This document shows positions 5,008 to 60,269 of a stretch of 64,000 nucleotides of DNA, one piece after another. Position 1 is the first letter of the stretch. The number at the start of each line of letters is the position of its first letter. The notes beneath the pieces are model-generated. The model searched no databases, was not told the origin of the DNA, and was given only the letters and a program-made list of their open reading frames with translations. Source of the DNA: Paragordius varius (taxonomy: Eukaryota > Animalia > Nematomorpha); NCBI GenBank assembly GCA_964247055.1, contig OZ176052.1:2418001-2482000 (forward strand), written 5' to 3'. Position numbers and translations under genes: made by a program.

Positions 5008-8000
5008 TATATAAATTGTATTTTAGCAATTAACTTATATTGTTCAAATTTTATTTATGATGTTAAGAAACATGTAAATTTTCACATTATTGTTATGAGT
5101 TAATAATAAAAATGAGCGCAATTTTAAATTAATAAAGAATTTTTCAAAAATTTTAAGTTTCATATTATGCATATATATATATTGCATTGTGGATTGTTTA
5201 AAATTTAAATTATCTACATATATTTTTTAAAAAATGATTAATAAATTAATTTTAGAACTAGGCTTCATACATATATTAGCGGTCCTTAAACTTTCTTAAG
5301 GTGTGATTTATTTTTTGATCCATGAGATCATTTTTAAAATAAATTTGCAATGAACAACTTAATACCTTTATATATAATAATATTTAAAATCTTTAAATTA
5401 TTTTTTTTTTATAAAAAGTTGTGTTAAATTATTTTATTTAAAAGTTAACTGGAACGCCCAATGTTGCGCACATATAATTTTTATTTTTTTCAATCATAAA
5501 TAAAAATGCAGAATTAAAACAATTATCATAATGAATGAATATAGAAATATCATCGAAATAGATTTAAGTAGATTAGAATTACTGGAAATTTTTTGGTATA
5601 AATATATTGAGCATTTTAATATACTTTTAAATGTTTGTTTAATATGTTTATCGGGAATTCGAAATTAGACGTAACTTGTCAAATATTTTTTATAATGCCA
5701 ATTTGGCATGATGACCCTTTTTGAGAAGAATGAAATTGATTTTTCAATTGAATTACGATTGATATTCAGATTTTTCAATATTGATTAATTATTTAAATTA
5801 TTGGTTCACATTTTCAAAATACCCGAATTAGTTGTAAGTTTATAGGTTATCAAATTTGTTATTTAATAAGAAGGACTAGATTTAAAAATCGAAAACGTGC
5901 ATTATAATTATATTAAAAGTGCATTCATTAGATGGGTGCACTCCATTTTTTATAAAAACTTACTATATTATAAGAGGGAAAAGGGATGACTTTATAACCA
6001 AGATTGATCATAATTATTGTGCCCACGTTTAAATTTTAATAATTTTATATATCGAAAACATCTAAAATATTAGCTCTTAAATTTAAATATCCACATAAAA
6101 TTTTAGAATGGACAAAAGGTGGGCAGTCCATGTGACTGTAAAGATTGTGCTTCAGCCTGTATTGACCCTATGCCTGTCTTACAACCAGATGGACCTGATA
6201 GCGATGAAGACGGTTTCTTATGGTGGTACATTTTTGATTCTGGTATAATTTTTGAAAAGATAATTATAACTTTTATATACCATTTACAATTCAAATTCAT
6301 CTTTGAACAATTGATTTACTCCCTTGAACATATATACCACTCACAATTTGAACAATTCAAATTCATTCTTGAACATATATACCATTCACAATTCAAATTT
6401 ACCCCCTTGAACCATTCAAATTCACACCCCCTTGAACAATTCAAATTCACACCCCCTGAACCATTCATATTGACCCTATAATAAATTATGTGTTTTTTAA
6501 GATTGAAAATTACCTGTATTTTTTATCATCCTTTTAAAAAATGATATTTTGTTTAAAATTAAAATTATACGGAAAAATAAATATACTAAGCCATAAAGTT
6601 TATTTCATATTAATAATAATGAGTTATATAATAGCGCGAAAACACATAATTGTTTTTTAGGGGTAATTTGTATTGTTCAAGAAGATGTGAATTTGAATTG
6701 TAAAAATGGTATATTAAATTTTTTTTATAAAGAAGAATGAGTAAAAACACATGTTAGTTTTTTTCTAAGGGTCTGCATTTTGCTACCAAGTTTTTTTATA
6801 AATATGGTTGTTTAGTAGGGACCAATGTTTGTAAGGTAAAAATTTGTTTTTTTACTGCATTGTCAGTGTCGTATAATAGATAAACTTCACTGAAACTTTG
6901 TTTGTTTAAGAATAATAAGGTTGGTTATTTAAGAATAATTTTTTTAATTCTGAAATGTATTATTTTAATCAGTCATCTTAAATTTTATTTTTTTCTTTTT
7001 CACGCAAAAAATTGGATGGAGGAATAAAAGTAATTAATATTGAGTTTTTTTTAAAAATAATGTACAATATTTATAATCAACAAATGAATAATTTATATCG
7101 AGATTATATACTAACCATAAAACTCAGAGATAAGTAAGAAGTTCATTAATTTTATAAAATTTGGCATTTGTATGTATACTTTTATTCAACGATTAATGAA
7201 TTATTCTGCCAGCAAAATAACTTATAAATATAATTTTTAATTATATTTTTGCAACAAACTATCATATTATACAACGATAGAAAATATAATAAAATGAGAA
7301 CTTAAAAATCGATAATTTTAAATAATTCTTATAATTTTACTTAAAAAATATTTTTTTTCTGTGTTTTAGGAAGTCCCTGGAGACATACTATAGCAGGTAT
7401 GGACGCTATGATATTCATTATGACGATGTGTTTTGGCTGTTTTGTCCTTGTATTTGCCTGTGCGCTGGCTTGGAATGCCAAAGGTGGCGCTTATTTTTAA
7501 TGCTCTTAAAATTTTTTATAAAAAAATTGTAGAAATATTTTTTAGATAAGTTCATAATAATAAAAATAATTTAATATTTTTCAAAGGTATTTTATTTTGG
7601 CCCAATGTTCAATATGTGTAATCTAATTTCTATTATATTGAATTTATATAAAAAATTATGCTAAGAAAGATTATAATTTATGTTAATTTGGGTAGTTTAA
7701 AAATTTTGATAATCCATGCAATTATTAAAATCTATTATTTTATGCGTTCAAGTAAAAATCAAAATTAAAAAGATAAAAAACATAAATCATAGTAGTTTTA
7801 AAACCAAGTATTTTATACAACCTTTATTTTTTTATGAACAACCCTTTGTTTTGTCGAAACGAAGAATAGAGATGTAAATTAGTAATATATGGGTTAAGTA
7901 TTAATATAAATCAAAAATATGTTTTTTTCCTTATAATAGAATATATTATTTTTATTTATATATATTTTAGCTTCGAATTCAACTTTTATTTCTACGGCTT

Positions 8001-11000
8001 TTGAAAGGGAACCAGATGCATTGAAAAATTTGTTGTTGAGCCAAAATGGTACAAATACTGACAATGATGCTAATATAAATGGTAATAATAATCGATTTAC
8101 GGCCCCTGTATATGCTAATGACCAATTAGATGGAACTGGTATAATTTTATACGTATTATTGGGAAAAGATTATAATTTTAATTTTTGAAGGATTTTGTTT
8201 GTTTCTCATATAATAAAAATAAGAGATAAAAAACATAAATGAGTTTTGATAGATATGTATATTGTATGGTATAAAATGATATTTTTTAGGATATATATCT
8301 ATGAGAGTTTATTATTATTTTGGTTGAAATTTTGATATAAATTTCAGGATTTCTTTTATATATATATATATTAGAAAGATTGTTAATTTTTAATTAAAAT
8401 CATCCTCATCATATTAATTTTTTGTAGATTTGGGTGCGGATAATTTTTTTTTATTTTTTCCTTTTATTCATTTATAATGTTTTTTTGTCTGTAAAAGACT
8501 AAGAGTGATTTTTGGCTCATAAAATTTTATTTTGTCAGTTTGAAATAACTAAAATATTTAACATAAAATCTTTTTTTATAATATAAAACGTTTTAGATAA
8601 GGTTATCATCACGGTTTACTTAAAATTTGCAGACCTAATCCATATTTTATTATGTATTATACGAATTTATATATTTTATTTTAAATCATAGGTTTTTTGT
8701 CACCCGCTTCCCCGGGTCATAAGTTACGACAGGCTTCAGATAAATTCCTGAAAGAATTTGTTATGTTAAGACGTACAGGATCTCCTCTTCATAAAATATC
8801 GCTTAGGCGAAAAGGTGGTCCTGAATCCAAAAGTACATCAAAATTGCTATTGGCTGGGAATGGTAATACGGATACAATGAACAGTAATAATGGTGAGAAT
8901 AATATCAAGAATAATGAAATGCTGCCTCCTAATGTAAAAATGGTTGGAAAAAGTGAGTTTTAAAGCTAACTAAACTTTAAAATCTAGAAAATTTGGGTTA
9001 TAATAATGTTTAATTTGAGTGTATTTTATGTATTTGGGTAAAAACTCAAAAACAATTAGGCTGTCAGATGCCTTTTATAAATATTTATTTTTAAATCAAT
9101 GCCAAAACTATGCAAATTAATAAATAATAGGAAAATGCTTTATTTATAAACTTTTGTTTCAATATATCGACATTTATAATTTAAGCGTTTAAAATGCAAA
9201 AATTACATTTTTTATTCATAAAATTTCGCGAAAATTTGTTTAAGGGGGTACCTTTTTGAATGTACGACTTTAATTAAAGTATTAGTTTTTTTACTAAAAC
9301 GCATAGTTTTGCGCATTTAATTTTATGATTGTTTTTGCACAGATGAAACAGTATTTCTATCGTCTCATAAAAATTCTACCCTGTTTGGTATTGGTGACTC
9401 TGGTGATAATCACGATGATATAATTGCAGCATCACAATCCCCCTTTCAACGTTACGTTAGTAAACGATTTCGTGATTGGGCTTTTGTATGCGCTCGTTAT
9501 CCTGGAACCATATTAACACTGGGTATTGTCACATGCATTATCATGTCTTGTGGACTAACGCTAATGCGTGTAACGACAGATCCTGTCGAGCTTTGGAGTT
9601 CTCCACAAAGTCGAGCACGCACTGAATTGACGTACTTTAATGAACAGTTTGGGTAAGGATTGTATATCTTTTGAAAGATTTTAAGGGTAGAATTGATTAA
9701 AAAAGTCGGTTAAGATATTGTAAGGATTTACGGGTAAAATTAAATTGATTTTTTTAGCAAAAGAGTCTGTCTGGTAAATTTGGACAAGATTTTATTATAT
9801 TTATTTTTGAATTGGTAAGCCCTAAGTTAATCAAGACTTTAAATAGTTTAATGAATTTTGACTTGAGATAAATGTATCTTGGGTAAGCCCTCATAAACTT
9901 GAACTTTATTAAGACATGTAACAAGATTAACTCTATTGTAGCTAGATTTTGCTTATTACTAAATTGGCGGGTGTAACTTTAACTTTTAGGGTCCGACATT
10001 AATACGAGTTTTGGTAAGTTAATTTTATTAATAAATGCAGGGTTGAAAGAAAATGTATTGATTGTAGGCGTTTTATAAAAAAATAACCATACATATTTTC
10101 AAATATTTGATGGAAATAACTCCCTTATTTAGGCCATTTTATCGGATTGAACAATTAATTCTCGTTCCCACTGATCAATCGTCAGTCATGTATGGTGATA
10201 AAAGTTTTGGACCGGTTTTTAGAAAAGAGTTCTTGTTACAAGTAATTTGCCTTATGATGCATTTTACCACCATTTTTTTCCGAAAAATATTTTTTTTACT
10301 AATTTTTAATTTATAGTTTTATAGAAATTTTTTTCACATTGATATTTAATTGCAATTATAACTAAACATAAATAGTAAAAGACATTGGCCAATAACCTAT
10401 CATATTGGATTGCGAAATAAGGGATTTAATATGTAAATTGGTAATATATTCAATTATATATTTTACACTGGTTGGTATTCATATAGGTCATATGAAAAAA
10501 TTATGGATAAAAAATATGGTTTTTTTTCTTAAAAATATTTTCTTTCATTTAATATATTATTTACATTCATTTTTTAGTTTATTTAAAATGTATATCAACT
10601 TATTTTTAACAGGCATTATCATTACAAAAAGCCATTTACAATATTAAAAGCTCCGTATCAACCAACGCCTTACATAAGAATAGAACAGTCATTACACTTT
10701 CTGATATCTGTTTTACACCCCTGAGCCCACTAAATACGAATTGTACCGTGCAAAGTTTGTTTCAATACTACCAAAATGATGTCGATTCATTGTTGACCGA
10801 TATTACGACCAATAAAATGCAACATTTCGATTTTTGTTCAAAGTAATTCCTTTTTTGTAGATATTTTTTATAATTTACAATCATCAATATATTTATTGGT
10901 TTTTTAATAAAAAAACCTTTGTAGTAAAAAATAATTACTATAAATTAATGTTGGATATGCAAAGAAATTTTTTTATTTTTAAATAAAAATCCATATTTTA

Positions 11001-13467
11001 GAAATCCCTTACTTTCTGACTCTGCATTTGGTGACAAACCTTGTTTAAGTCTTTTTGGTGGGCCCATAAATCCTTGGTTTGTGCTTGGAGGTTTCAAAGG
11101 TTATTATTTGTTATAATATATCCAGTTTTTCATACTGTGTATAAAAATAATTTTATATATAAAGTTTGCATTTTTATCTAATGCTTTTTTCAATAAGTTG
11201 ATTTTAATTATATAGAACTTGAAAAATACGCGTTAATACAAATAAAGAAAAAAAAACGATCTAAATTTATTTTTATCTGAATTTTATATGCATATTTTTG
11301 TTTTTTTAGGACGGTTCATTATAAAAAATATATGGTTTTAGGTTTTTGTTGTAGATTTTCCAACATATTGATTTTAACAAAGAAAAAAAAGTTTTATCTT
11401 TAATATATCATATGTTTAAATTTAGGTGATGAGTATAGCGGTTCAACAGCTCTAGTCATAACATTTGTGGTCAATAATGCACCTTCCAATCAACTTTTGG
11501 CCCAGGCTTGGGAAAAAGAGTTTTTAATTTTTTCTTCTATTAAATTTTTTCTTTTTTTCTAAAAGGTAAAATTTTATACTATTGACTTTTTTTAAGGTTT
11601 TTTAAATTAAAACCTGCGCTTGTTAGCTAATGTTAATCATTAGGCACTTTTTCGATTTAATAAGGTGGAGTTATATCGTTTATAATTGAATGTACATTGT
11701 GTTTATCCAAATAGATAACATTAAATGAATGATATTATCAACGAGAACGAATATTTAATGTTAAAATAATAATCAGAATTCTCGTAAAATTTGTTAAATT
11801 AAACTATATTCAAAATTTTCAATACACACATGGTAGTATTTTTTTGCTGGATGAAATAAAAGCAAAAGAAATAGTATTGATAAAATATAATTAAAACAAA
11901 ATATAAAAAAATAATTATAAAAATCATATACACGTTTCCGATTTTCAAACTAGGTCCCTAGGTTTTAAGTTATAATCGTTTAAGGTTAATCATAAACTTT
12001 TGCTTTCCAGAAATATGTAAATTTAAATTACATATGACTCTTTTATAATTGATGAGTTTTTAAAAATACAAATCGCTTATTAATCTATAAGTTAATGCTA
12101 ATCATCATGCAATGTTTTTAAAGGGAAGTCTACATTTTTTATAAACAATTAGTTTAGGAGTATTTGGTAGAAAATAATCATTTTTAATAAATTCCATATT
12201 TTTTTGAAAAATTTTTTTTGCAAAAAACTTAATTTCATAACATCATTTTATTTTATTTCGATGCAGATCATGAGCTTAATATTTTTTCTCACATCACCTG
12301 AAAAATCTATATATAATTTTTTATTTTACCCATTTAGATTTTTGATGTTTATGAAAAATTACAGCAACCCATTGTTCACTGTTACTTATCAGGCTCAAGT
12401 ATAAGTTTTTTTATATTATAAACATCTAATATAATATAATTCTTTTTGCCAAAAAATAACGATTGAAAAAAATTATGATTTAGTTTTCAATTTCAAATAT
12501 AATATTTTTTTTAATATTTTGAATTAATGTGCTATTTTAGCGTTCAATACAAGATGAAATTGAACGGGAGAGTCAAAGTGATGTCAACACCATATTAATC
12601 AGTTATTTCGTTATGTTCCTTTATATATCCATCGCTCTAGGCCATTTCCGTAGTGCTAAAACATTTCTGGTATTTTATTTTTTCTTAATACAAAGTTATT
12701 ACAGGGTATTAAATTAAAATTATTACGACGACAAAGCATAAAAAAGGAAAATACGAACATTTTTTTTGCAAAAAAAACAACAACAATGTTATATAATTTA
12801 TGTATTGGTTATCGAAATAAGGATATTAATGGAATAACAAGCGCACTAAATTGCATATATATTTCACATTTGTAATCATAAATTAGGATCAAGAAATATG
12901 AATTGCAAAAAAATAAGGCTTTTACTTTGTTGTGTTGTTTAATAATGATTTAGATGTTTCGATAGATTATTTATAACTTTACCTTTTATTAAAGATTCAC
13001 GGAAAATAGTATCATTTTCATTAAATAATATAAATTTGTATGAATATTCTATTGATTGTGCTTTTAAAGTTATATCCCTATTAAACCAATTTTTTTTATA
13101 ATTTTTGTTCATTTTTAGTTTAACTTACCATTCAAAACTCTCTCTTACCTTAAAAAAGATGTCCCAATTTGGATATAATTAATTTTGATACTTTAAATAT
13201 TTAAACCAAAAAATCATATATAATTTTCCAGATTGATTCTAAACTTTCGATTGGGATGGGGGGTGTACTTATAGTGCTAGCCAGTGTTACCAGTTCGCTA
13301 GGAACGTTTTCTTACATTGGAATACCGGCTACGTTAATTATTATGGAGGTTGTTCCATTCCTTGTTTTAGCTGTTGGGATTGATAATGTTTTCATCATGG
13401 TACATCAATGTAGGGTAAGGTTTTTATATATAAAATTAGAAAATATTTGTTCATTTGTATTACATAG

Positions 13468-13512
<45 letters not shown>

Positions 13513-16079
13513 ATTACTCATTTTTAGTTATATACTGTGAAACAATTGCCCCTAATGGCATTTTTAATTTCAATTTACTAATTTACATAAATGATTTAAT
13601 AGTAAGTTTTAATGTCACTGTCTTCAAACCTTAACAATTTTATTACACAAACATTTAAAAATTATTATAAGGGTACATTTTTAAGTTTGATTTGCTAAAA
13701 TTGGAAAAATTGTTTCAACTTGTTATTCAATCACAGGATTGATTTAAAAATTGTTAGGGTAAATATTCTAATGTGCTAATTGATAATGGCATATTCTAAA
13801 AATGGTCATCATAATTGACTAACTCACAATAAAAATAAAATTATTTTTTTGTTATATGAGCCATAACTTTTTAAACCTAAATGATTACAACATTCATTGA
13901 GTCTGTAACCAATTTACATCCATCATTTCTTATTATACTTTATAATAGATTATTAAAAAAACTAAGATTTTAAAACATATGGTTGTCGTTTTTAATGCCT
14001 TTTAATTTTTACATTTTGCTGTTTTTAATTTGATATTTTAGTTTATTAGGAATTTTTTATTTTATTTTTCACTCACACGCTGTTATATTATTTAGCGTAT
14101 GAATAGAGATCCAAAAATTAGTGTTGAACAACACGTGGCTAATGTTATTGGTCATGTGGGTCCTTCCATGCTGCTAACCAGTTTGAGCGAATCAATAGCT
14201 TTTTTCTTAGGTTTTTTACATCATATTTGCTTTATTCTTTTTTTTGATTTTATAATGATATTCATGTTTCAGATAAATTGATAGATAGATAATAAATATA
14301 TCCAAAATTTTGGGTATATTATTATTATAATAACTTATTATGTAATTTTATTTGATGTCCCGTTTAGGAAATTTTGTAAAATAATTGTTGAATCTTGAAA
14401 AAAGTATTGCTCTGATTTAATTTTTTTTATATTTGTCAATCATCTATAACACTTAGTTAGGGGTGTGGATTTCATTTTTTATCACTAAAATTAATTCAAA
14501 ATATGTCGTTTTAAGGCTACTTATACTGATTTTATAGCTAAAAAGGAATGTTATTCATTTGATTAAATACATTATTATATTCTGACATTTGCAAAATTTG
14601 ATGTGTCAAAGTAGCGTTTTAAATTAATGATATGTAGGACTTTTTATATGCGTAAATATGAAAAAACTTATATTATTATATATATATTGGTGATATAAAA
14701 ATAATTTTTATATAGGCGCATTTTCCAATATGCCTGCGGTTCAAATCTTTTCCTTGTATGCCGGATTGGCTGTACTATACGATTTTTGTTTGCAAGTTAC
14801 CTGTTTTGTTAGTCTTTTAACCCTAGATCTTAAGCGTTATGAGGTAATAAAAAATTTTTAATAAAATTTTGTATTATATGGGGTATATGCTGTTGTTGTT
14901 TTAAGATTACATATATGTCACTTTTTTAGTAAATTCTACCCTTAAATAATATCAAATATATATTTTTGCAACACTATTAATGGAAAAATATATATTATTT
15001 GGGGAAAATGGAAAAAAATTAAATTATAATATTTTTTTCTACTAATTGTCTATAATTAATGTTAGATAAATACAATTTAAAAAAATGGTTTTATTTTATT
15101 GTTTTAATTATTTTTGGCTCGTTGTAAGGATGTACTTAACTTTAAATGATTACAATTTAAAAACTACATCCTCAATTATAAACCTTATTTCATATTTATT
15201 CAACATAAGCTAATTAGGTTTAAACTCTATTTTTTGTTCGGAAAACTCAGTACAAGGGAGGTCAGGTCTAATATAAATAAATAATTTCAATATATTGCTA
15301 ATATTTATATATTTTATAGGCTAATAAACCAGATATCTTTTGTTGTTTTCCTCCCACAAGCTCTGAACATCAAAACTCTGCTAATAATGGTAATTTAGCT
15401 ATCAATGCTTCAATCGAAAATTCAACGAAACAAGAACATAATAATAAAACAGCAAATAAATTTGGTGTTTTATATCGATGGACAGAAAAATATTATGCCC
15501 CATTTATCTTGAGTGATTGGATACGGCCTTTTATTGTATGATATTTCTGGTTTTTTTGTGTTTTTTAAACAAAAAATATTTTTTTAAATATTACTTAAAA
15601 TTATATTAATTTTTTATATTTTTTACCTTAATTTTTACAAAAAGGATATACTGGATATTTCAGTTATTTTATATACATCTAATATAATACCTCAAATCTC
15701 ATGGAAGGAAAAAAATGTAGATTTTTTATCCAAATATATGAAATTAAGAAATATATAATTTTGCAAATGTTATATGAAAAATTGCCTTTTTTATAGATGA
15801 TTCTGTTTGCCGCATTCATATGTTACTCGGCAGTTTTGGCATCTCGTGTTCACATTGGTTTAGATCAGAAAGTTTCCATGCCTCATGTAAGTTTAATAAA
15901 TTTTATGTGAATAAATTTTATTAACTTTTTACAATGTTTTTTTCAGAAAAATAATAATATTAATTAATTTAACGCAAAACATGTTCAAATTGTGTTAAAT
16001 AATTGAGAAAAATTTATATTATTTGTAAATAATAATTATTATTTTCATTATATATACTTGATTGAAATTAACAAAATTA

Positions 16080-16116
<37 letters not shown>

Positions 16117-18460
16117 TTTTTAAAATAAATATTACGGATATCAATTTTTGGTGCAGAGGACCTATCATTATTTTACACAGTATATATTAAATAGAAATTG
16201 CATAAACGAATGAATATCATTTTTTATTTTATCCCATTTATCATTTCCAAATATTCAATCTATGTATATATATATTTAATAAAAAATGTAAAATATATAG
16301 GATTCATATGTGTTATCTCAATTCGAAGCTATGGAAAAATATTTGGCTGTTGGCCCGCCCGTTTATTTTGTCCTTAAAACTTCACCGAATTCACTCCTAA
16401 ACTCTGACGGAAAAAATCAATTGTTGTTACAAAATAATATGAATTATAATTTTTATCCAGGAAAATTGAATTTTAATCCCTTACTATCTGCCAATATTGG
16501 TAAAAATGAAAGCTTCAACAATATTGAGACCAATAATAATAATAATTTTATAATAAATAATTACATGTTTCGTAATATGAAAAAGTTCCCCGCTAAAGAT
16601 TACTACCAGGATTATCATTTCAAAGACGGGTTTAAGGAGACGAGGTATGATGAACATATGTTTAAATATGTTTTAATTACTTTTTGAATATTTTTATAAA
16701 TTTATTATTGGAGACCTAAAACTATTTCAATTGTAGAATTACTTTATACCGACAGATATTATTGTCAAATTTACTTTAATTTTTGTTCAATATAACTTTT
16801 ATTGTAACGTATAAGAAGATTATATGATAAAACTATATAACATATGAATACAGCATACGATACTAAATATCAAATTTGTCTTACATACCGCCGACTTAAG
16901 CCACTATTTATTCTATTTATATCTCTTTAAAAAAAATTCTCAATACATTTCTAATTTTTATTTTAAAACCTACATAAGGTCAAAACACAATAATAAAAGC
17001 CTAGCAAACCTTATTTTTGGTTCTTACTTTTTTTAATGTAACGCAAATTATAACATTTATTAAATTTAAATTTGACTGTGCTAACAGTTTATATTTATAT
17101 TCCTTATTTCTAAACCCCAAATTAAAGGGTATATTGGAAAAAAGATTTAGAGAAAATGGGTTTCTTTTTATGAAATTAAAGATTAATCTTTACTCGGTCT
17201 TTGGTAGGCTAGTGTTAAAGCCTTTTATAGTTTTTAATACAATATTATGGAATCGAATATAATCATTGTCGATATATAGTATTTCTTAGGTTAATGTGCT
17301 CCAATTTACTCTGTTGTATGTAACCAAGGAATATACCTTTTTATAGTGAAAACTTTTTGATACAAAAAAACTTTTTTATATCCTTTTGTCTTTGAGTATT
17401 TGTATTTCAAAGCTTTATATCTACATTAAGGTTTCCATTAACAATCTTATTCCAAAGATCCTTGATCTAGTTTGTCTTTATACCTACTTATATTTTTCTC
17501 TTACCATTTATATATATATATATGTATTTAGTATGCACAATCAAGCAGTTGCTTTTAATTGGACCGACGTGGGGGCACAAAATTTGGTTTGTGGAGGGGA
17601 CGCGTCATGTGATCGTTACAGTTTAGTGCGTATGATTGCTTGGCATGCTAGTTATGCCAATATTAGCTACCTTTCACCCCAAAGTGAAGTAGCTAGTTGG
17701 ATTGATGATTATATGGCCTGGTCTGCCCCGGGTACTGGTTGTTGTCGAATATATGAACAAAACTCTCTAAATGTAAGTTTGATTAAAAATATTTATTTGG
17801 GTAAAATCACACGTTTTTTATGGAGTTTTGTAAAGACAGGTGCATCATAACATAAGACAACAAATTTTTCTTGCCACTCGAGTTTTTTGCATTTTCCAAT
17901 ATTTACTATCAGGTGTTTTTGTTCAACACCTCACTATCCTATAAGTAATTGGTTTTTAACATATTCATTATCTTTTGCATAATAATCTATTTTTTTTGTT
18001 AAACCAAAAAATTATTTATACCTAGTCTATTAACATTTACATAATTTTCAATATTTTTGTAACTAAAATTTATAATTTCTCGCTTATAGAATATGAGTTT
18101 TTGTCCAACGTCTCAGCCCATACCCCCTGGTAAACGCTGTGTTAAATGCCCCATTCATTACGGACCACCTTCTTCAAACGCCAGGAGAATAATGGGCACT
18201 GATTTTTACACTTTTTTGCCTTATTTTTTGGGTGACATACCTAATGCTAATTGTCCTACCGCGTAAATATATATTTACAATTTTTTTGAATATTTTATTA
18301 TGATTAAATTTGTATTTTAAAAAAAATATTCTTTTTTTTGACCATTTAATTGTGTAGTTTTTTGCAGACGAGAGTTTTAATTACAGTTATAAGGTGTACC
18401 TAGCTGAATTAAAAATAATTACAATATTTCGAATGATCTTTTATCTATTAAAAGAAAATG

Positions 18461-20931: not shown

Positions 20932-23900
20932 AATTATAAAACTACAATCATACCTAATACATAATTTCCATAAGAACTGGAACTTTTTTTATTTAAAACG
21001 GATTTAGGGACAAAAACATTGATTAAAAAATGAACCAAAAAATGATTCCGTCTCTAATCTTTGTAGGTTTAGGCATTCATATACCATTTACAAAATCTAT
21101 ATAAACTTGGTTTATAGGTGTTTTTATCCATAATGTTTTATATAGGATATGGATAGTAATAAAAATCTAACGATTCATATCCAATTAACCAGCCTTCAGT
21201 AGTTTTATTTTAATAAGGGTGCTAAGTTTCATTGTGATTATTTTAAAACAATCTATTAATAATCGTATTGGACAAAATCATAAAAAGAGGTAAAAAAGTC
21301 AAAAAAGGTTTGAAAAAGCTTTACAGTATGCATTTTAATGGTTGCTTATTTGACACCATAGTACGGCAATTTGTTACACAGTAGTGTATCGAAAAAGGAA
21401 AGAAAAGAAATCGTTTTCAATATTTTGTTGTTTTTTCCAAACTCTAATGTGTTGGAAATAGCCCAACTATAATGTGAAATAAACAACCATTAAAATACAC
21501 ATTGTAATACTTGTCAGCCCAGGGTTTTATATCGAAATAGTAATTCTATAGCGTATAACAACGTACATAAGTAAGGTATTATTAAATTATATTTTTATAT
21601 AGGTCTGTTTGCATTCATGCGCGTATTCAGTATTGAGTTAAATGCCGTAAGCCTTGTTAATGCTGTAATGGCGCTGGGGATTTCAGTTGAGTTTGTTTCG
21701 CATATGGTGAGGGCTTTTTCACTTGCTTCTTGCCGTATAAATGCCTCATTAACGCAATACATTTCACAACTTCAAAATAGCAGTCTGCATAATCATGATA
21801 CTACCACCCCAATGGATAGCAATGAGGTTTAATTTAAGTTTATAGGTGGTTTAAAAGGGATAAATTTTTGGTTTTTCTTTTTATAAACACCTAACAGAGT
21901 TTAATATAATTGCTATATGGCAACATGATTTGGAATCATACGAGCAAAACTTAAAAAAAGTTAGGCTGCCTTAGATATAGATTGTGGTAACACAATCTAA
22001 TAAATATTTAACAATTAAATATTTTATATAAGAAAATTAAGGTTGAAGATAATGGTTGTCTTACGAAAAAAAAACTTTGTCCTTATGTTTTTACGTATTG
22101 AATTATTATTTTTTTTATGTAAATCCAATGAAAGTATTTAGAATATATATATATATATATTTGACCACATGATTTACGGAAAAGATTGTTATTATAAGGC
22201 AACGTAAAAAAGTAAGGTTATTCTAAACAATAAGGAGATGATTATATGACGTTTACTTTAAATCTAGTTAATGATATTTTTTATATGTTTCCTTGATGTT
22301 AAATACTAACTATCGTTTTTAAAGAGAGCAACAGAGATATTAATTGGTAACGCATTTAATTATACACTTTTGGATTGAAACCATTAAAATTATGTAAAAA
22401 AAATTTAGATATAGGTAGTATTATTATATAAAAATTTTATCCTTTTATCTTTTGAAATAAAACACTCATCATAGGTTACCTTGTCACCCAAATATCAAAT
22501 ATATTAGTATAAATAAATTTTAAATTTGATTTTATAATAATTCTAATTAAAAACAGGAATCAAATTCAAAAAATGGTAATGGGACTACTTCAGTTTTACC
22601 TGACATTGTATCACAAATTAAAGAAGAGAAAAAGATTATTACGGGCCCAAACTCTTTAACAAACGAAAATAATTCAACTCAAAATGATATTCATGATGCC
22701 AATAGTATTTGTTGCGATAATGTTTTGGATGTTAATAAAGCACGAATTAGGTTATGGGCCGCTAACAGAGCCTTGGTTGATACGGGGAGCAGTGTATTTA
22801 GTGGGATTGCTTTAACAAAATTATTGGGTAAGTTTTGAATTTTTCTTTTTTTTTCATTTAATATTTAGGAATTATTGGTGCTTTATTTTTTGATTCTAAG
22901 GATAATAAATTTTGTGGACAAGGATTTAGACTTTATATAGTCCGTTCTTGTTAGATTTCTATAGTAAAATTTATTTTGAATTTCGTTTATTTCTGTGTAG
23001 AGATTACTAAATATTTTAAAATGTTAGTATTAACTTGTTTTTAACACTTTATTACCTTTGTGAGCAAATTTTCTCCCGACAGTAATTGATTTTAATTGTT
23101 GACTGTCTTACCCCAGAAATTAAAAAAAAATCTTTTACATAATTGTTGGATAACCAATTTTCACAAAAATAACATTGAATACCGTAGTTTTTTTTAACAG
23201 GTAGTTTTAACCTCTTTAATAAAATGTATATTCTGTCTTACATTGAAAAACTTGATGTGTATGAAATATTAAATCATTTAACGACCCAAATTTTTTTTAT
23301 GTAAACAAAATATTTATTACTATACTTTTAGGTATATGCGTGCTAGCTTTCAGTAAATCACGCATATTTTCTCTTTACTATTTTCGCATGTACTTGGGTG
23401 TAGTTATCCTTGGAACACTTCAAGGCCTCTTTTTTCTACCCGTCCTACTGAGTTATTTGGGACCGGTGAGATCTATCAAATCCTACAATAATGTGCAACG
23501 AAATAAACTGAATAAAAGGGTATTTTACTTTCTTTCTTAACAATTATATGAACATATTACTTTTATGTGACATTTTTTTATACGATAAGATTTTTGGAAC
23601 CTAAATATTGCAATATTATTAATCCGTCTTTAAAACTTTTTATATTTATTTTACAAAAATTGGTTTTATATGTTAAGATATTACTAAATTTATTATTATT
23701 GGAGCAAAGATCGTTGTCGATTTATTGCTTTTTCGAGGGTGTATTTTCTCCAGTTTATTCGATTGTAAGTGAGTGATGTTAACTGTTGTAAAGAGAGATT
23801 GGTTTCTTTGGTTAGGTTTTCGATCCAACGCATCTTGCAGCGTCCACGTTTCCTGGATCCTTCGACCTTGCCTGTCATTAGTTGGAATTCCAAGTCATTA

Positions 23901-25189
23901 TCTCTGGTAATGTGACCAAAGTATAAAAATTTCATTTTGAGGCACATGCCAATCAGGTGTATCTCGGGGTTTATTTTGTCAAGGATTACAGTGTTTTTTA
24001 TTTTGTCTTTCCAAGTGATTCGAAGTATCTTCCGCCAGCACCAGTTTTCGAAGGCCTTAATGTATTTTTCGTCTACCTTTTTTATTGTCCAGCTTTCTGA
24101 TGCATATAGCATGCTAGGAAATATTAGGGCTTTAACTAAACGGATTTTTGTTTTAAGTTTGATGTCGTGTGATGACCATAGTTTATTATATTTTATCATT
24201 TTTGTCTTAGCAATTCCTATTCTTCTTTTGATGTCTGGGGTGCTGTTGTTTGTTGTATTTATAAGACTGCCTAAGTAAGTGTATTGGGACACTACTTCTA
24301 TTTGTTGGTTGTGAAAAGATAAGTTGTTATAGTGGTTATGAGCGTTTATAATCATGATTTTAGTTTTTTTAAAGTTGATCGTCAATCCAAATTTTTGACA
24401 TTCATTTGAGAATTCTGTAAAGAGTTTTTTCAGGTTGTCCACTGAGTTTGACAGCAGTATTGTGTCATCAGCATAGTGAAGTGATGATATAATATTGCCG
24501 GCAATGCTTATACCATTAGTTTTATCTATGTTCCGTAATACGCTTTCTATGCAGACATTAAAAAGAGTGGGTGAAAGGACACATCCTTGTCTTAAACCAT
24601 TGTTCATTTGTACCCAATTACTTATGCCATGTGGGGTTTTTATGTTTAGTGATGAATTGGAACAGAGAAGCGGGATTTAGATCCAATCGCGGATGCAGGG
24701 ACATGATCAGCAATATACGTTGGTTATTCGAAAAACAAATTGAATTTCAGAAAGAAACCCACATCTGCTTCATTGATTTTACAAAAGCCTTCGACAGCGT
24801 GAAACACGACACGCTGTGGAAGGCTCAGATGGGAGTTTCAGATCACATTTTAAACATTATTAAATCCCTCTATTCCAATTCATCACTAAATTTATACGAT
24901 TACTAATTAAAATTTTGACTATATTTTATTTAATGATTTTGTGATAAATAATGAAAATTAGAATGGTAAAAAACTTTTGTCTTGCTCTAATAAAACTAAC
25001 TCAAAGGACACTGACAATACAAGTATTAATAAAGCCTCAAATTTATCGACCCGAACGGATTTGAATGAAATTGAAAGCCCATCCCTACTTCAGAACCAAA
25101 GCGTGAAAAATAATTCTGATGCCAAATTACAAACTAACCACGATACTACTGGTAAATTAAATAACTTTTCATGCATAAAATTTAAATAA
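3056..25189 (+). CDS. NPC1: Niemann-Pick C1 lysosomal sterol transporter, ~1738 aa. Exons: 3056-3248, 3275-3759, 6107-6212, 7370-7483, 7971-8138, 8692-8952, 9343-9652, 10133-10241, 10613-10842, 11002-11099, 11426-11519, 12338-12398, 12541-12669, 13232-13414, 14096-14210, 14716-14843, 15320-15535, 15797-15886, 16301-16644, 17532-17772, 18090-18262, 18658-18725, 19292-19444, 19945-20181, 21603-21826, 22557-22827, 23332-23519, 24962-25189. The last exon is less certain; unspliced alternative stop at 23540.
   Basis: Signal peptide; Cys-rich NTD (CCDKEQ, CPACLQN, CDCKDC); [17 protein letters not shown]; [10 protein letters not shown]; AQAWEKEF; [21 protein letters not shown]; VGPPVYFVL; SWIDDY; FMTYHT; [15 protein letters not shown]; GSSVFSGI; [12 protein letters not shown]. 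All junctions are GT-AG and phases are consistent (5217 nt). Confidence 0.96.
3249..3274 (+). other. 26-nt spliceosomal micro-intron (NPC1 intron 1)
   Basis: GTTTATTTTTTAAATTTTATATATAG. Removal joins ORF 3056-3274 to ORF 3289-3810 in frame ([20 protein letters not shown]), restoring the NPC1 NTD. Confidence 0.9.
6276..6713. mobile_element. Foldback/MITE family A2 in NPC1 intron 3
   Basis: Ends TATACCATTTACAATTCAAATT ... AATTTGAATTGTAAAAATGGTATA. Left arm has tandem CAATTCAAATT(C/T)ACCCCCTTGAAC subrepeats. Related copy at 45526-45778. Confidence 0.7.
20324..20616. mobile_element. MITE family B (Tc1/mariner/pogo-like) in NPC1 intron 24
   Basis: Inverted arms GTAAAAATTGAAATTATACGGACAAAA / TTTTGTCCGTATAATTTCAATTTTTAC; same arms at 30130, 36046 and 55526. 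Confidence 0.75.
23683..24895 (-). mobile_element. 5'-truncated RTE LINE with 5' inversion, in the probable last intron of NPC1
   Basis: Minus ORF 23696-24607 ([37 protein letters not shown]) ends in a (TAA)n tail. The upstream RT part ([20 protein letters not shown]) is on the plus strand at 24665-24890. 11-bp direct repeat ACTAAATTTAT at 23683-23693 and 24885-24895. Confidence 0.92.
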
Positions 25190-43996: not shown

Positions 43997-45525
43997 TTAA
44001 ACATGTTGATATATTGTTTATATTTCATTTATATGCATACTTACAACATTATTTTAGTAAATAAATTAAATCATCTTTGATTATACTGAATACGTCTTTA
44101 TGGTTTCAGAAATCTTATTTTTTAGATTTTTTATATAACCTGGTGTTTAAAGCATAAGAGATGTAACACCCATCGATAAAGTATAAATATATAGGTTATG
44201 TGATCAAAAAATATATTTAACCCTAACTTTTTATGTTTGTCTTTATAATTAAATTTTTACTGTATACATTTAGTTGTTTCAAATTAGGATGCGCTGACTG
44301 AATTATATATAAATGGTTCTAACAAGTTTTTAATATATTAACGATAAAAATATTTTTTTAAAATATTTGTAATAATATAATATTTTCTATAACACCTTCT
44401 TGTACATATTTTAAGTTTTGTCATTGAAAATATCCGACACTTAAATATTATGACTTTTTGGTATAAGGAAATTATTAATGTTGTATGTACCTATTTTGGA
44501 GTTATATAATCCACAAGACCTAATTTCTAATCTTGAAAATGAGGACCGTTGTAACCTTTTAATACTTTTACAATGTGTGTTTAATTATTATTATGAATTC
44601 TAAATATCTTTATATCATGGTAAGATCTAAAATATATGTAGTTTTCTATTTATTTTTAATTGATCTTTCTTTTAGCAACTTCACTAAAATTGTTTATGAT
44701 TTTGTTCTGTTAACGTCGCAAGTCAAATAGTTTTGTCGTAATGATAAGTGCTAACATGCACGCTCTAATCTTTAGCAAATTACATTGGTCTATTTAACTT
44801 AATTAATTTTAACTGTGCCCTGTAACGCCATGGCGTGGCTGGTCGAAATGAATTTTCTAGTCACAGGAAATTGCGACAAATGAAATTATATGAATTACGT
44901 AACAAAAAAATATCCCCTTTTATTCCTGTTTGTTTTTTACTATTATACGAATGCGCTTATAATTTAATTTATTATTCAAATCATAAAACTCTGAAATTTA
45001 AGATCAACCTTGTTTTTATCTAATGGGGATTAAAAACTATCTTACGCTCATTGAAATAATAAATGAATTATTGAATCTGAACAAGATATTTGTACTGGAA
45101 ATTTGTCAGCCAACATTCTTTATTTATGTGTAATCTGTAAATATACTTACACTTCAAGAGTGGTCTAGAAGTTGGTCTTTCAACATTTTTCTTTTGTTTT
45201 AAAATTTTATAAATCAAACGGTGTCTCATTCATCTTTTTTATTATTTTTATCTATTCTCTTTATTTAACGCATTTTAAATCATCATCTACTTTTTATCTC
45301 TCAGAAACCGTATATTTTTTTAATTTTATAAATATTATAATATTAATAAACAAGTAATTGAAAAATACTTTCTGGATTATTTTGAAATTTTTGTTAAAAA
45401 ACATTGATAAACATAATAATATTGTTAAATAAAAAAATAGAATTAAAAAGGTGGTTTTCTTATGAAAAATATTAATTTAGAATTAATGTATAATAAATAA
45501 AGAATAAGTTAAAAATTACGATATA

Positions 45526-45778
45526 TATACCATTTACAATTCGAATTTACCCTTGAACAATTTGAATTCACCTTAATTCGAATCACCCTAAATAATGTGT
45601 TTTCAAGATAAAATCATCATAAATATGAAATATATCTTTATGGCATAGTTTTAGTATTATTTTAATTTTAAGCAAAATTTCTTTTTTTAAAATATAAAAA
45701 ATATAGGTATTTTTTAGGGTGAATTTGAATTGTTCGAGGGTGATGAGATTTTCAGGGTGATTGAGGTGTAAATGGTAT
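45526..45778. mobile_element. Foldback/MITE family A2
   Basis: TATACCATTTACAATTCGAATTTACCCTTGAAC ... GGTGTAAATGGTAT; homologous to 6276-6713. Confidence 0.68.
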
Positions 45779-47039
45779 TTATCGATTTATACGTCTTATT
45801 GACTTAGCTGTGGCAAATTTTATTTTTTTCGCTTATAATATGATTTTAGAAAGGATGTGGTTAAACGCAAGGGCTTATTCACAGACTCGACCAGCCTAAA
45901 TTAATAAAGAATCCGTATGAGACCATAACGAATTTGAATGCCACCCATTTTCAGTAAATTTACTCAGGAGACCGGATTATTTTTTTGGAAGACATCTTCA
46001 TGCATTTAAAATCTTTACTTCATAGGACAAATACACAGGACCATTAACAAATTCTTTTGTCTCATAAGTGCAAAAAATTGGTTTAATATGTTTGCGAATT
46101 TTATTTTGCAAAGAAGGTGATTTTACGGAAGGATCTGCGGGGACCGTTTAAAAGGGATGTTTAAAATTTAATGGGTTTCCCTCTCTTCTATCTTAAAGCC
46201 ATATTCTACATTTTTCAAATAAATATTTTAATTTCAGGAATATCGATATCTTTCAATATAAAAACATTTGATTCCATTATTATCAATGTTAATTTTCATG
46301 TCCCATCCATAAATGGTAAATTTCGACGTCAATCATAATAGGAACTCTACATTAAAAAAAATACTTGATATAATTTTCTTACATATCCTAAGAATAAACA
46401 ATTAAATGGTTACAATGTTGAAGGTATACATAAGTTATGTATCATTCATTGCTAAGCCAAAGTTCCGTATAAAAATATTGCTATCCAACAATCTCTAATC
46501 GTAATTATTTAATAAGATTATTTTACCCTCTTTTTCCAAGGATGTTTTGTATCAATCAATAGGTAAACTTTGTCATTATTTTTAATAAAGGCTCAAGATT
46601 ATCATAATTGCACTAAAAAATATTGTGATCGTTATTCCATTATTATTAATTATGTATTTTAATCAATTATGGCATAATTTGAATTCCACATTTGAAATGG
46701 ACCATTAATTATTTGGCAGACGATTTGCTATGTAACGGCATTTTTCAAATTTTATCAGTTAGATTTTTTTAACTAATCCGTATATTTAAAGACTTTAAAT
46801 TCAAATTTATTAAATATATAAAACACACTCATCACCAATATTCAAATTTTTCGCAAAATGATTTGAATTAATTTTATAATACAACATGATATCTCTTGAT
46901 TATATTCGCAAGTGCAAATGTAATAAAATGTTATTATATTTTATTATGATATTATTAAGTCAGAAATTCCTAAATTCTCCCTGATGAATGTACAAAGGCA
47001 TTCCAAATTCTTAAAAATAACCCTAAACCTTATTATAAT

Positions 47040-50000
47040 ATGGGGGTTAAAAATATAAATTATTTTGAACCCATAATAATCGGCGTGTTATTTACCATGA
47101 TTTGTTTGGGCCAATCATTAACAACCTCCTTATTTGCAATTCATGATATTAATTCATTCCCTTTGAAAAAAGTGAGATAATTTGTTGTCAAATATTATTA
47201 ATTTTACATAGTATAATATATTTTGCAAATTTTTTGTCAAATATTTTTTATTTTACATATATTTTGCAAATTTTTTTGTTTGACATATTGACTCTTGAAC
47301 CTCAAAAATAGAGTTATTGTCTTAAAAACTTTCTGAGGTCTATAACCTTTTAACTCTTTTGAGTTTTCAATACTTTTTTGGGGGGTATTATTATTATAAA
47401 GATTAATGATAAGTGTATTATGTAGGTTTTATGTCACAAAAATATGATATATATACAAGTTGCTTTTACACGATGTGATTGATATTATCTCCTCAATCTA
47501 GGTAAAAAATATTGTCCTAAATTATTTAGTAATGCTATATTTATTTATAATTACTTTAACCAAAATATATTTTTGAACTGATAATGTTATTTTGGAATAG
47601 CAGGTGTTTATACATTTTTTACATAAATTTCTTAAAAATTATGTAATACGTAATATAATTAAATTCCGGAACCAGACTAAGCTGATTAAAATATAATTTA
47701 TTTATTATTATGTTTCATTTTCTCTTTGTACTTTTTTAAGCTCAAATTTTTATATGTTTTGACTCTATTTAGATGAATCAAACAAATGACATGCAAATAA
47801 TAACTCCATCTAGTCCAGGTAATAATATTTAATTTACATTTTCATACCAAAAGTATTTATAATAGTCAAATCCCAAAGCTTAAACAATCACAATGAATAA
47901 AATGATAAAATTTTTTAGATTCTATTTAGCTTTTAAGAGGGGCTTAGATAAAACTTTTTAGGAAAAGCTTAAGGTTAAAATATTATCATAAATATTTTAT
48001 AGTAAATGTACTTTAGAAGCTCCAAAAATATACCCTATAATTCCTATAATTTTATCTTAAAGATATACAAGTTGCGGAACGTAAGCCAAAATTTATATGT
48101 AACTTTCTTAAAATTCAGATTTCTAATTTTCTGAATAATCTAGTTTTTTATGAATTATTATGGAATCGCATCTAGATTAAATATATATTAAAAATGGTTT
48201 AATATTCCGCTACCTCTCAAATATTCTATCCAGATTTATATTTATCAAAACTTATATGGGATTTATGATAAACGTAAATTTTAATTATTATTATAAAAGA
48301 GCGGCTTACATTAACAGTGTTAATTGTGCCATTTAATAGTGTATTCGTGTACGATGATATTAAATATGCCATTGTTTCAAAAATTTATATTTTAAACGCA
48401 CGTGATGCCACGAATTGCTTGATCGCTATAATACTAAAATCTTAACCAAGTTAATAAATTTCCGTGATATATTTTATAATAACAATCAAATAATTTTTCA
48501 AACAATTTAAATATTTCAAAACTGAATGCGCAAATTTGCGATTTTTCGATTTTGGTTGATATGAAAGATATCTTAAATGATTAGCCAGCCCATAAAACTA
48601 AAAACACCATGGAATTCTACCATATCTATAAAAAAAATTTTTTTTTAAATAATTTTAACCCCAAATGTATGCAATGAGATGACATTTTTGCTTTAGATAT
48701 GTTTATAATTAATGATGAGATGTGTGGAATAAAGGCTTGTCAAAATTTTGGTAAATGTTCAATTACAATGATCTCATCCTCCGATTCCAAAACAGCCTAC
48801 CCATATAAATATTGCCATTGCCTCCCGGGATTTTATGGCAAATTCTGTCAGTTTCATTGTATGATAGTTTCCTTTTTTCGTATTTAAAAAATTTTAAGAA
48901 AATTAACTCAAAATATAGTTTTTACCTGTTAAATTAATGGAAATTATGACTATTAATACATATTTAAACAGACAAAATAAGGGAAGGGGCTGCATGTACT
49001 CTAAAGGCCCCTCAATCGACTCAAAGCAAACAACCAATTTCTACAGGATGGCCTTTTTTAGGTCATATCGATTGCAATAAATGTGTTTGTCGCATGGGTA
49101 TCGTGGCATGTTCTAGTGTAAGTCAATTTTTTTTACCCTTCTATCTTTTTGATTTTACCTGTGTTAAAAACGGTAATTTTGGATTCTTTACAAAAAATTT
49201 ATAATGTTTTACAAGATTTTAAATAAAGATTGCGTTTAGGATATATTTTCTATATCAAATGCATCTCTTTACAACCGTGATATATAGATCATTTGCGACA
49301 AATCTATATTAACGAATTCTCTGAGTCAATTATCAAGACAATCACCTGACTTCTGCTTAAAAGATCCCTGTAACATAAGTCCAAATACCAGACACGGGCT
49401 TAACGTTTCGCGAGCCCTTTCACCTTTATTATGTCAAAATGTTGAGAAAAATACCATCTATTGCCAATTGTCACAATTGCGTTTGAACGAAACAAATCTA
49501 CCTAAGGTATAATAAATTTTTTGTAAGCTTTTTTTTTAAATTTTTTATTTATAAATAGTTTTTGTCATTGTTTTTGATATTCTAGGGATTAAAACTTGGA
49601 AAACTCTGTCAACAAATAAAGATGCATGACGCTTTTCTGGATTCTCTCATTGAATACACATCAGCCCTTAAACAGGATGAACAATTTATTGAATCACAAA
49701 TAAAATATGATATAGACTGCTTTACAGATCATGTCCCCAATTCAGTTATCATAAAAACGGTATAAATTAATACTGTGCACATAAATTATTTTTTAAAAAC
49801 TTACAGTGAATACTAATAATGTTCTAAAAAAATTTTTAATCCGAAAAAATTTTTGTAAAAAAGTTGTGGCCTGGGTATTTACAATTAAATTTTACAAAAT
49901 GTAACTGGTCTTTACATCTTAATGCAATGATACCACTCATACTACTTTTTTACATAAATGAAAAAACTATTTTTACTAGGTTATTTTTAAAATATTTTTT

Positions 50001-50893
50001 TTCCAATATTCTTAACCTTTTAGACTATCTATTGTAATGATTGTGATTCAATGATACTTCTTAATATGGGCCCTTCAAACATCTCCTTAAATGGTATCTT
50101 GTCATCTAACCAAGATCTACTGGAAAACACAGTAACGAACTCCCTCAAAACGCTAGAAAACAAAATGGCACACTCAACTGTAAATGGGAATGTTGAAATC
50201 TCTATGGGTATACCCTATGTCATAGATGTTAAACCATTGCATATTGCAACACCACCTACAAAACCAAATGATTATATCCATAAAATTATTGAGACAAAAC
50301 CTAATGTTTCAACTTCACCGCCTACCTCAACAAATACACCAATAAGCACTAATGTTTCAAATGTCCCCCAAAATTCAATATACATACATAATGAACAACG
50401 TTATTACACTGTGGTTTATATGTTGATGTCACAAAGCACGACGACCACTTTAAAAACTCTTACAAACTTATTACCTGGAAAGGATCTAAATGCTAAGGGA
50501 GATTCACTAAAAACCGAGAACAATAATTTTACTCGGGAGATGAACACATTAATGTATGCACAAAACGTCTCACACATTAGTCCATTTCATCTTTTGCTGC
50601 TGATAAGTTCGTGTGCATTATTTATTGTGACACTGCTGCTTATCAAATATCGTGATACTATACATTGTGCGATACGAAGAAAGCATCAACCTACATACAA
50701 TCATGGCAACCATTCTAACAATACAAACTTTAACCGTACACACCTGCATGATTTTTCGGGACTTAGATATCAACCATCAATTAAACCGCCCAATAGGAAT
50801 GATATCATTACTTCATTCAATGTTCATGAAAATAAAATGATATATGCCGAATCTTACTTGCCAAGCTATGAGCAATGTGTTGCGGAAAAATAA
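47040..50893 (+). CDS. Jagged/Serrate-derived type I membrane protein lacking C2/MNNL, DSL and all but one EGF repeat, 582 aa. Exons: 47040-47171, 47773-47818, 48697-48858, 48972-49117, 49288-49506, 49586-49759, 50024-50893
   Basis: Signal peptide (IIIGVLFTMICLG); one 6-Cys EGF (CGIKAC..C..CHCLPGFYGKFC); VWC DCNKCVCRMGIVACSSIIC; Jagged-type juxtamembrane block C-x7-N-x6-GL-x5-C; T/P-rich stalk; TM LLLLISSCALFIVTLLLI; tail ending LPSYEQCVAEK. Phases consistent (1749 nt). Confidence 0.8.
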
Positions 50894-51102
50894 TTGCGAT
50901 ATTTATTTATTTATTTTTAGGGTTTAAAAATTAAGTTATATTATATAAACTAATCGTGTAATAATATATTTATTAATATAATCAATTACATCATTATACT
51001 AATTAATTATTCTATCATCGGCAATCGTCAGTAATAAATATAATGAATTTAGATAGTTTTTAGGGAGAATACAGAATAATGTTTCTAAAAATATTTTCTA
51101 AG

Positions 51103-52613
51103 TTATTTTGGGTTTGACACAGCTGTTACCACGATTTCATCAAGTTGGACGGAAAGAGGCATACGTAGAGCACTCATTAGGGCATCTGAAACATCTTCGG
51201 GTCTTAGATAAATTTTACTTGCAAAAAATTTATCGACTTCGGATTTGTCTAGAAAAATTTAAAAAATATTAAATTATAATTCTATTATTGATATAAAATA
51301 ATTGGCAATCTGGAGTTGAGTATATCCAAAAAACTACGTAAATTTTATCAGGCCATCAGCAATTTGTGTCAACTTTATTCACTTAATAAAAGAAAAAATA
51401 ACATTAATTAACATTTTTTTAAAAATATATGAATCTTTCAAAAATGGAATGTAAGATTGTTTGTATTGCCATTGGTTGCTGGGTAAATTTCACTCCAATT
51501 AAAATACATAACCAATATAGTCATATTATTGAGACACATATTATGTGCAAAATGAGTTTATATATAAATTTAAAACATGCAGTCCCCCTCTTCTCTGCTC
51601 AAAAACAAAAAAGTCTATGAAAAAACTTTTATTACCCTTGACCACTACTGACCTCCGTGCCACCCGTAATTTTACTACAATCATGCTTAATTATAACTTT
51701 AAAACAAAAGGTAAAAAACAAACTTGCAATCATTTCTTTGTCCCCCTTTTTGGCCAAATGATCAGCAAAGTTTGTTTTAATCCACCCTGGGCACAGAGTA
51801 ACTACTCTGATACCCCTAACATTTGGATGGTATTCATTCAATTCACGGCGTAAACATTGAGTCATAGCTGTTATAGCAAATTTAGACGCTGTGTACATGT
51901 GAAAAAATGTATCATTTCCTTCACCATCTTGATTGGGAAATAGAATGACATCCCGACCCACGATACTGCTCACATTAACAATAATTCCATCACGAATCCC
52001 CGCATGAGCCATGAGTATAATGGCTTCTTTAGCGCAAATGGAGAGGCCATATATATTAATTTTAAGCGTTGTCCACCAATGTTGATAAGTTTGTTTTCGA
52101 TTAGCCATTTCTTTTTCGCTGTACGGATCAAGTCCTTTACAATTTTTTTCGCTCTTTAAAAAGTAATCTGGAAAGGCTAAACCCGCGTTATTTATACAGA
52201 TGTGAAGGGCCTTGTACTTTTTCCAAATGTGCGCAAATAGGGCCATAACTTGGTCCATTTTACCCACGTCACATTGTATGGGCTCTATGGTTGTACCGCC
52301 GGCTTGGGTAACTTCTTGTACCAATGGCTACATTACATAAATGATAGTGTAAAATATAAAATTGTAAAGACAATTACAAATATAATTTTTAAACAATTTA
52401 TTTTTAAACTTGTTTTTTTTTTCAAATATAACTTAAATCGTTTTGGGATGCAAAATAAGGAATAGAGAGGTGATCTAAATACTGTATATCAACAATTGTA
52501 CAGGTTGTAGAAAAAAATAATAGGTTTAAAAATATGGTTTATTTATCTACTTATGTTATGTAATTATATTTTTTACTGTATATTTAATATGGGTAAATTA
52601 ATTAGTATATATA

Positions 52614-59649: not shown

Positions 59650-60269
59650 TATACCATTTACACTTCAAGAGTGTCCTTGAATAGTTCCAGTTGGTCCTTG
59701 AACATTTTAAGTTAGTCCTTGAACACTTCAAGTTTGTCCTTGAACACCTTCAGTTGGTCCTTTGTCTTTTTTGTTTTGTTTTTAACTTTTATCAATCAAA
59801 TCGTATATCATTAATCTATTTTATCGTTTTTAACCTATTTTTTTATTATTTACGATATATTTTAAATCAATATCAACTTTTAATTATTGAGAAACCGTAT
59901 ATCCCTATTAATTTCTTAAAATTATTTTGGAAACTTATAAAATTTTAAAATGTAATTAAAAATATAAGTTTTCTGAGCTATTATTTACGATTTTTCATGG
60001 AAACATTTAAAAGTTAATAATTTTGTTAAATTCGATAAAAGTGTGAAACAAAAAAGTGGTTTTTAAATAAAATATTTTATTTTTAAATGAATAAATATGT
60101 AGTAAATAAAGAAAAATTAGTATAAATAATAAATTTAAAAAATAAATGCATAAATCATGGTTAAAAAATTTAAACATTTAAAGGACTAATTTGAAGTGTT
60201 CAAGGACCAACTTTAAATGTTCAAGGATCGACTTGAAGTCAAGGACACTCTTAAGGTGCAAATGGTATA
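59650..60269. mobile_element. Foldback/MITE family A with 21-bp subrepeats
   Basis: TATACCATTTACACTTCAAGAGTGTCCTTG ... CAAGGACACTCTTAAGGTGCAAATGGTATA; internal sequence resembles 26411-27015. Confidence 0.82.

Follow-up and report, generated by a model that had tools for sequence, protein, structure and literature searches.

A probable 'headless' Jagged/Serrate-derived gene in the hairworm Paragordius varius

We analysed a 64-kb stretch of the genome of the hairworm Paragordius varius (this whole stretch is called the window below) and, within it, a candidate gene at 47040-50893 on the plus strand. On balance, we read it as an intact gene for a 582-residue type I membrane glycoprotein derived from the last, C-terminal third of a Notch ligand of the Jagged/Serrate type, that is, a probable 'headless' derivative of such a gene. 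The Cys-rich region of the protein is probably homologous to the cysteine-rich domain (CRD) of Jagged/Serrate. Descent from Jagged is argued from domain order and intron positions, not from sequence statistics. In the predicted protein, a signal peptide is followed by one EGF module, a VWC-like Cys motif, further Cys-rich sequence, a Ser/Thr/Pro/Asn stalk, a transmembrane (TM) helix and an 82-residue tail; as a Jagged derivative, its VWC/Cys-rich region would be degenerate and its juxtamembrane domain very divergent, and the stalk is predicted to be glycosylated. An earlier note on this DNA had introduced the word headless, which is consistent with everything in the window.

The model was rebuilt from the sequence as seven exons on the plus strand with a coding sequence of 1749 nucleotides, uninterrupted by stops, and with GT-AG borders at all introns. 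This confirmed the seven-exon open frame with signal peptide, linker and one EGF that had been described, and every peptide quoted from it was found. The introns are 601, 878, 113, 170, 79 and 264 nucleotides long and have phases 0, 1, 1, 0, 0 and 0; the phases given previously (1, 1, 0, 0, 0) are correct for introns 2-6. Exons have 30-43% G+C overall (33-43% in exons 3-7 and 30-33% in exons 1 and 2), and introns 14-24%. Putative exon 1 (47040..47171) supplies the start codon, a signal peptide with a hydrophobic core at residues 11-24 and a GTGAGA donor in phase 0. Its G+C content is 29.5%, against 21% in the intron that follows, and its haplotypes differ by two replacement changes and one silent change. 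Putative exon 2 (47773..47818) is a 46-nucleotide linker that moves the frame to phase 1; with three variants among individuals in those 46 nucleotides, it is the weakest piece of the model.

Profile and homology searches, including every profile test reported here, were run exon by exon and not on the spliced protein. Exon 3 (48697..48858) encodes one EGF module at residues 69-110, with six Cys, symmetric 1-1 phases and an unusually long C3-C4 loop. The EGF six-Cys pattern CxCxxG[FYW]xGxxC is present at 48813-48848, and the match to Pfam EGF_2 (E 0.0019, 18.9 bits) is below the cut-off of 22.1 bits. Exon 4 (48972..49117) holds the first half of a VWC-like module (C...GW...DCNKCVCRMGIVACSS) and is followed by a phase-0 intron. 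Exon 5 (49288..49506), which had no Pfam match, contains the rest of the Cys-rich region and a strand-like segment ending in ...NLPK, again at phase 0. Exon 6 (49586..49759) reads GLxxxxxC, a helix-like stretch and ...IDC...VIIKT before a further phase-0 intron; it corresponds in position to exon C of the JAG1 reference described below and may form the middle part of a juxtamembrane ferredoxin-like domain of Jagged type. Exon 7 (50024..50893) encodes the end of the juxtamembrane part, the stalk at residues 366-416, the TM helix at residues 481-500 (50585-50644), the tail and the stop codon, with an AATAAA 140 nucleotides downstream of the stop. The N-terminus is hydrophobic, the ectodomain has 20 cysteines, and nine of the 12 N-x-S/T sites lie in the ectodomain.

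A reference for comparison with JAG1 came from a scan of metagenome contigs with a degenerate DNA pattern of DCNxCxCxxGx[IV]AC, which returned 28 loci, two of them JAG1-like (L006 and L021). We used L021, a 2191-nucleotide genomic fragment with four consecutive JAG1 exons whose borders are forced; we take it to be ruminant and not human, considering the ruminant-type stretch resembling a short interspersed element in an intron and a protein that differs from human JAG1. The other locus, a 1017-nucleotide contig with a mammalian, possibly human, JAG1 exon, was not used in the comparison. In L021, exon A is the VWC exon, entered in phase 1 and ending in ...ACSK at phase 0; exon B (VWCGPRPC...EMMSP) and exon C (GLTTEHIC...IHVAI) both end at phase 0, and exon D (SAEDIRDD...KSRT) leaves in phase 1. 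These borders agree with the JAG1 strings and intron positions given in the earlier note.

Two phase-0 introns of the hairworm gene fall in the same alignment column as their JAG1 counterparts in three MAFFT modes and by Smith-Waterman, namely (with a slash for the intron) ACSS/IIC against ACSK/VWC and NLPK/GL against MMSP/GL. The second of these, the xxPx/GL intron (intron 5 of our gene), sits within the region of the Jagged-specific Pfam model PF23575 ('Protein jagged-1-like, predicted ferredoxin-like domain'), which covers the end of JAG1 exon B and exons C and D and scores 47 bits with exon C (model positions 23-66) and 42 bits with exon D. The third phase-0 intron (IIKT/T against JAG1 HVAI/S) can be aligned only by hand, anchored on IDC/IAC, and MAFFT favours another alignment; the phase-1 intron that follows the EGF lies one residue away from its JAG1 counterpart and is of a kind generic for EGF modules. 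The claim that the introns match the JAG1 boundaries is thus exact in column and phase for two introns and approximate for the other two (the phase-1 intron that precedes the VWC and the third of those in phase 0). With four introns in about 825 nucleotides, a given position would coincide by chance with a probability of about 0.005, and two of the three JAG1 introns with about 7e-5. The exact column matches support descent from a Jagged/Serrate-type gene.

The order of parts is likewise that of Jagged/Serrate (JAG1 after EGF16), with an EGF, a VWC-like motif, a Cys-rich stretch, a juxtamembrane domain, a TM segment and a tail, and the DCN...ACSxxxC motif shows 11 identities in 19 residues. 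The two proteins differ in that ours has no C2/MNNL or DSL domain and a single EGF, against 12-18 in Jagged (PMC2770060). It is also without four CRD cysteines, the gene has no intron before the TM exon, and the tail is unrelated. After the EGF, the N-terminal VWC sub-motif is all that is seen of a VWC, with every Pfam match sub-threshold: for the DCNKCVCRMGIVACSS stretch of exon 4 these were Pacifastin_I (22.6 bits), FnI_RECK (19.1 bits) and PF23244 (16.9 bits). PF00093 matches JAG1 at 27.2 bits and does not match our exon 4. The earlier note had named RECK as an unrelated family to which the Cys-rich region might belong. JAG1 exon A, however, itself matches FnI_RECK, Pacifastin_I and PF23244 in addition to VWC, so the RECK and pacifastin matches that it shares with exon 4 are no argument against Jagged.

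Nothing resembling a Notch-binding head was found in the window, in agreement with the earlier report that no C2/MNNL, DSL or further EGF coding sequence lies upstream. With the 64 kb read in all six frames, the EGF-core regular expression and CxCxxGxxxC each gave a single match, and a DSL-like six-Cys expression gave none on either strand. A scan for Cys density showed no further Cys-rich segment near the gene, and the stretch from the end of NOC3 to exon 3 has no additional coding-looking open frame that contains Cys. C2/MNNL coding segments were found neither in the model nor in the 64 kb, whichever frame was read, and the 47 kb upstream and 13 kb downstream gave no C2/MNNL, DSL or extra EGF coding sequence.

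Several results weigh against an intact, Jagged-derived gene, and three rival explanations draw on them. In the metagenome scan, 26 of the 28 loci were not Jagged (bacterial proteins, chordin-like VWCs and repeated small VWC/pacifastin-like modules), so the DCNxCxCxxGxxAC motif is generic by itself, and a scan of prokaryote genomes for DCNxCxCxxGxxxC[S/T]K gave seven bacterial loci and no Jagged. PF23575 did not match exons 5, 6 or 7, each tested singly. Local alignment to L021 gave z=7.0 (BLOSUM62) and z=10.7 (BLOSUM45) with the motif included, L021 having been selected through that same motif; with the motif excluded, z was 2.8 to 3.6 with BLOSUM45 (0.5-1.6% of shuffles reach the score) and 0.1 to 0.4, which is chance level, with BLOSUM62. 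The Cys/Gly spacing, described earlier as the same as in JAG1, does no better than chance, as the shared Cys spacings (5, 10 and 22 residues) are expected from random Cys placement (P=0.37). A word-index search found no relative of exon 7 (289 residues) or of its last 165 residues, and a full HMMER scan of 1.84 billion representative proteins with exon 7 gave 0 matches. Searches of the ESM Atlas with exons 4 and 5 gave no usable match, and those of the PDB by phmmer with exons 4, 5 and 6 gave chance antibody and AraC matches only. The tail was inspected by eye for the Mib1 N-box, IKNxx[D/E]K, whose central Asn is essential (PMC11887331); it has no IKN core and reads ...SIKPPNRND..., so the competition for Mind bomb that had been suggested is not supported. 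The generic motif, the missing PF23575 match, the chance-level results and the orphan exon 7 would suit an EGF-VWC membrane protein that is specific to the lineage and not related to Jagged, its likeness being convergent or due to the shared VWC module only. We consider this unlikely because the xxPx/GL intron lies inside a Jagged-specific region in the same column and phase as in JAG1, because the intron within the VWC motif is also shared with JAG1 whereas invertebrate VWC loci (L009, L013, L015) have one open frame across the module, and because the order of EGF, VWC, juxtamembrane domain and TM segment is that of Jagged.

Other doubts concern the 5' end and whether the gene is live. No run recorded as RNA contains the gene; the four best-matching runs are all DNA, as their contigs cover introns and intergenic DNA. 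Exons 1 and 2, for which the basis is an open frame, splice signals and a modest rise in G+C, are therefore unproven, and 46171-46315 offers an alternative first exon in phase 1, hydrophobic as well but with G+C at background level; either candidate 5' end yields a head-free protein. Intron 2 contains a high-copy repeat (48385..48583), in which word depth rises to about 44,000 from about 300 in both flanks and loose ends occur at 48481 and 48514; a second copy was not found in the window. All short-read Logan contigs break inside this repeat, at 48481-48514, and since exons 1-2 are connected to exons 3-7 solely through it, their join is not independently confirmed. The gene could on these grounds be the 3' exons of a full-length Serrate/Jagged, with C2-DSL-EGF exons that lie outside the window or were split off by a mis-join at the repeat, and with signal-peptide exons that are a chance frame: the phase-1 acceptor of exon 3 could be fed by any EGF exon, exons 1 and 2 are rather variable, and hydrophobic open frames arise readily in AT-rich DNA. 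We regard this as quite unlikely, considering that the 47 kb upstream are occupied by NPC1, a retroelement, bystin and NOC3 on both strands with no EGF or DSL, through which a transcript from farther upstream would have to read, and that exon 1 has a good start context along with its GTGAGA donor and raised G+C. As for variation, the four best-matching runs were placed on 45400-51350, and the two that represent a second individual (X3 and X4) diverge by about 1-9% over the length of the gene, with the highest values in exon 7, against about 1% in flanking non-coding DNA. There are 45 differences over 517 nucleotides (intron tail plus exon) in the exon 7 region at 50024-50440, together with a 9-nucleotide insertion at 50315/50316, and 12 differences in 275 nucleotides of the tail region at 50603-50880. 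The listed variants (11 replacement, 6 silent, none at Cys) are compatible with weak constraint and not significantly off neutrality, and are no proof of purifying selection. This ratio, the 4-9% difference in exon 7 and the lack of an RNA run would also fit a decaying or non-functional partial duplicate of the worm's own, very divergent Serrate gene. The chance of that seems small to us: about 1570 nucleotides of open frame extend over five exons with intact splice sites in a genome of 25% G+C (for the 290-codon frame of exon 7, at 35% G+C, the chance is estimated at about 1e-9), the insertion keeps the reading frame, and no Cys is hit among the listed variants.

In nearly all of the 26 non-Jagged loci of the metagenome scan, the motif is followed by ACT. 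Several of the loci returned by the scans (L001, L016, L017, L019, L023, L026, L030, L032-L035) are on GC-rich bacterial contigs, several of them from Myxococcota or Polyangiales. The secreted proteins encoded there share the DCNxCxCxxGxxAC[T] module of VWC/pacifastin-like type, in some cases as tandem copies, so a Cys motif with an animal look is common in bacteria. Another group (L009, L011, L013, L015, L020, L028) consists of AT-rich eukaryotic contigs from one sample series. Each of these encodes a whole VWC in one exon (...DCNTCQCxxGEVACT...CCPTC) that no intron interrupts, unlike the split VWC of JAG1 and of our gene.

In Notch ligands, the C2-DSL-EGF1-3 module binds Notch EGF8-12. A Jagged-derived protein without this head could therefore neither engage Notch EGF8-12 nor activate Notch canonically. 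For mouse Jagged1, the CRD (857-1067) is compact and, as an Fc dimer, binds weakly to Notch1 EGF33-NRR and to Jagged1 C2-EGF3, and the CRD of X-Serrate-1 is required for signalling (bioRxiv 10.1101/2021.02.19.432005). By the mechanism that we prefer, the hairworm protein would display a Jagged-type Cys-rich domain at the membrane, and this domain may, by weak contacts close to the membrane, modulate Notch or full-length ligands. A role independent of Notch is about as likely as modulation of Notch. The stronger proposal, that the hairworm has an expressed and selected CRD-only Serrate derivative that is tethered to the membrane and tunes Notch or the remaining ligands by membrane-proximal contacts, or else a surviving stand-alone EGF-VWC building block of Jagged, strikes us as unlikely.

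DLK1/DLK2 and DNER are vertebrate Delta-type type I membrane proteins without a DSL domain, regarded as modulators of Notch and not as canonical activators. Our protein resembles them in being a type I membrane protein related to a Notch ligand but lacking DSL; they differ in having several Delta-type EGFs and no VWC or CRD, whereas the hairworm protein would keep the opposite, membrane-proximal Jagged-type end. Their pattern of several Delta-type EGFs directly before the TM segment, with no VWC, is not what is seen here, where one EGF is followed by a VWC-like/Cys-rich region. Caenorhabditis elegans has a split ligand system in which DSL proteins act alongside separate DOS-motif proteins such as OSM-11. 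It is a precedent, from a sister phylum, for spreading ligand functions over separate genes; it differs in that the DOS motif belongs to EGF1-2, not to a CRD, and no partner gene is shown here. We know of no described gene that retains only the part of Jagged from CRD to tail. Gazave et al (2009, PMC2770060) describe a Trichoplax protein with EGF and VWC but no DSL and discuss whether it may represent a precursor module of Jagged. Going by the published description, it is similar to ours in that EGF is joined to VWC in the absence of DSL, and different in that it has seven EGFs and is placozoan (PMC2770060). The role of the membrane-proximal Cys-rich region of Jagged/Serrate is poorly understood, and a natural gene with CRD, anchor and tail would isolate that function. 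Such a gene would be the Jagged-side counterpart of the DSL-less Delta relatives DLK1/2 and would bear on the dismantling of Notch ligands in the nematode and hairworm lineage.

The window is animal DNA of 25-30% G+C. Upstream of the candidate gene are an NPC1-like gene (about 3289-17850, plus strand), fragments of non-long-terminal-repeat retrotransposon endonuclease/reverse transcriptase in several frames (294-2457 on the plus strand and 23696-24906 on the minus strand), bystin on the minus strand and NOC3 on the plus strand, with its last open frame ending at 43996. Downstream by 740 nucleotides, and tail to tail with the candidate gene, is an exon of a short-chain dehydrogenase (51632-52324, minus strand). 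As a possible syntenic link to a related hairworm, this gene was used in a word-index search, which, at a cut-off that was too strict, found no relative. To be without a relative at E<=1e-10 is odd for a member of so large a family, and the filter or the strict cut-off may explain it. Besides the repeat in intron 2, a second very high-copy repeat lies at 45400-45797, with partial copies at about 6270-6570 and 60002-60119; across the two repeats, the word depth is 1e4-1e6, against about 300.

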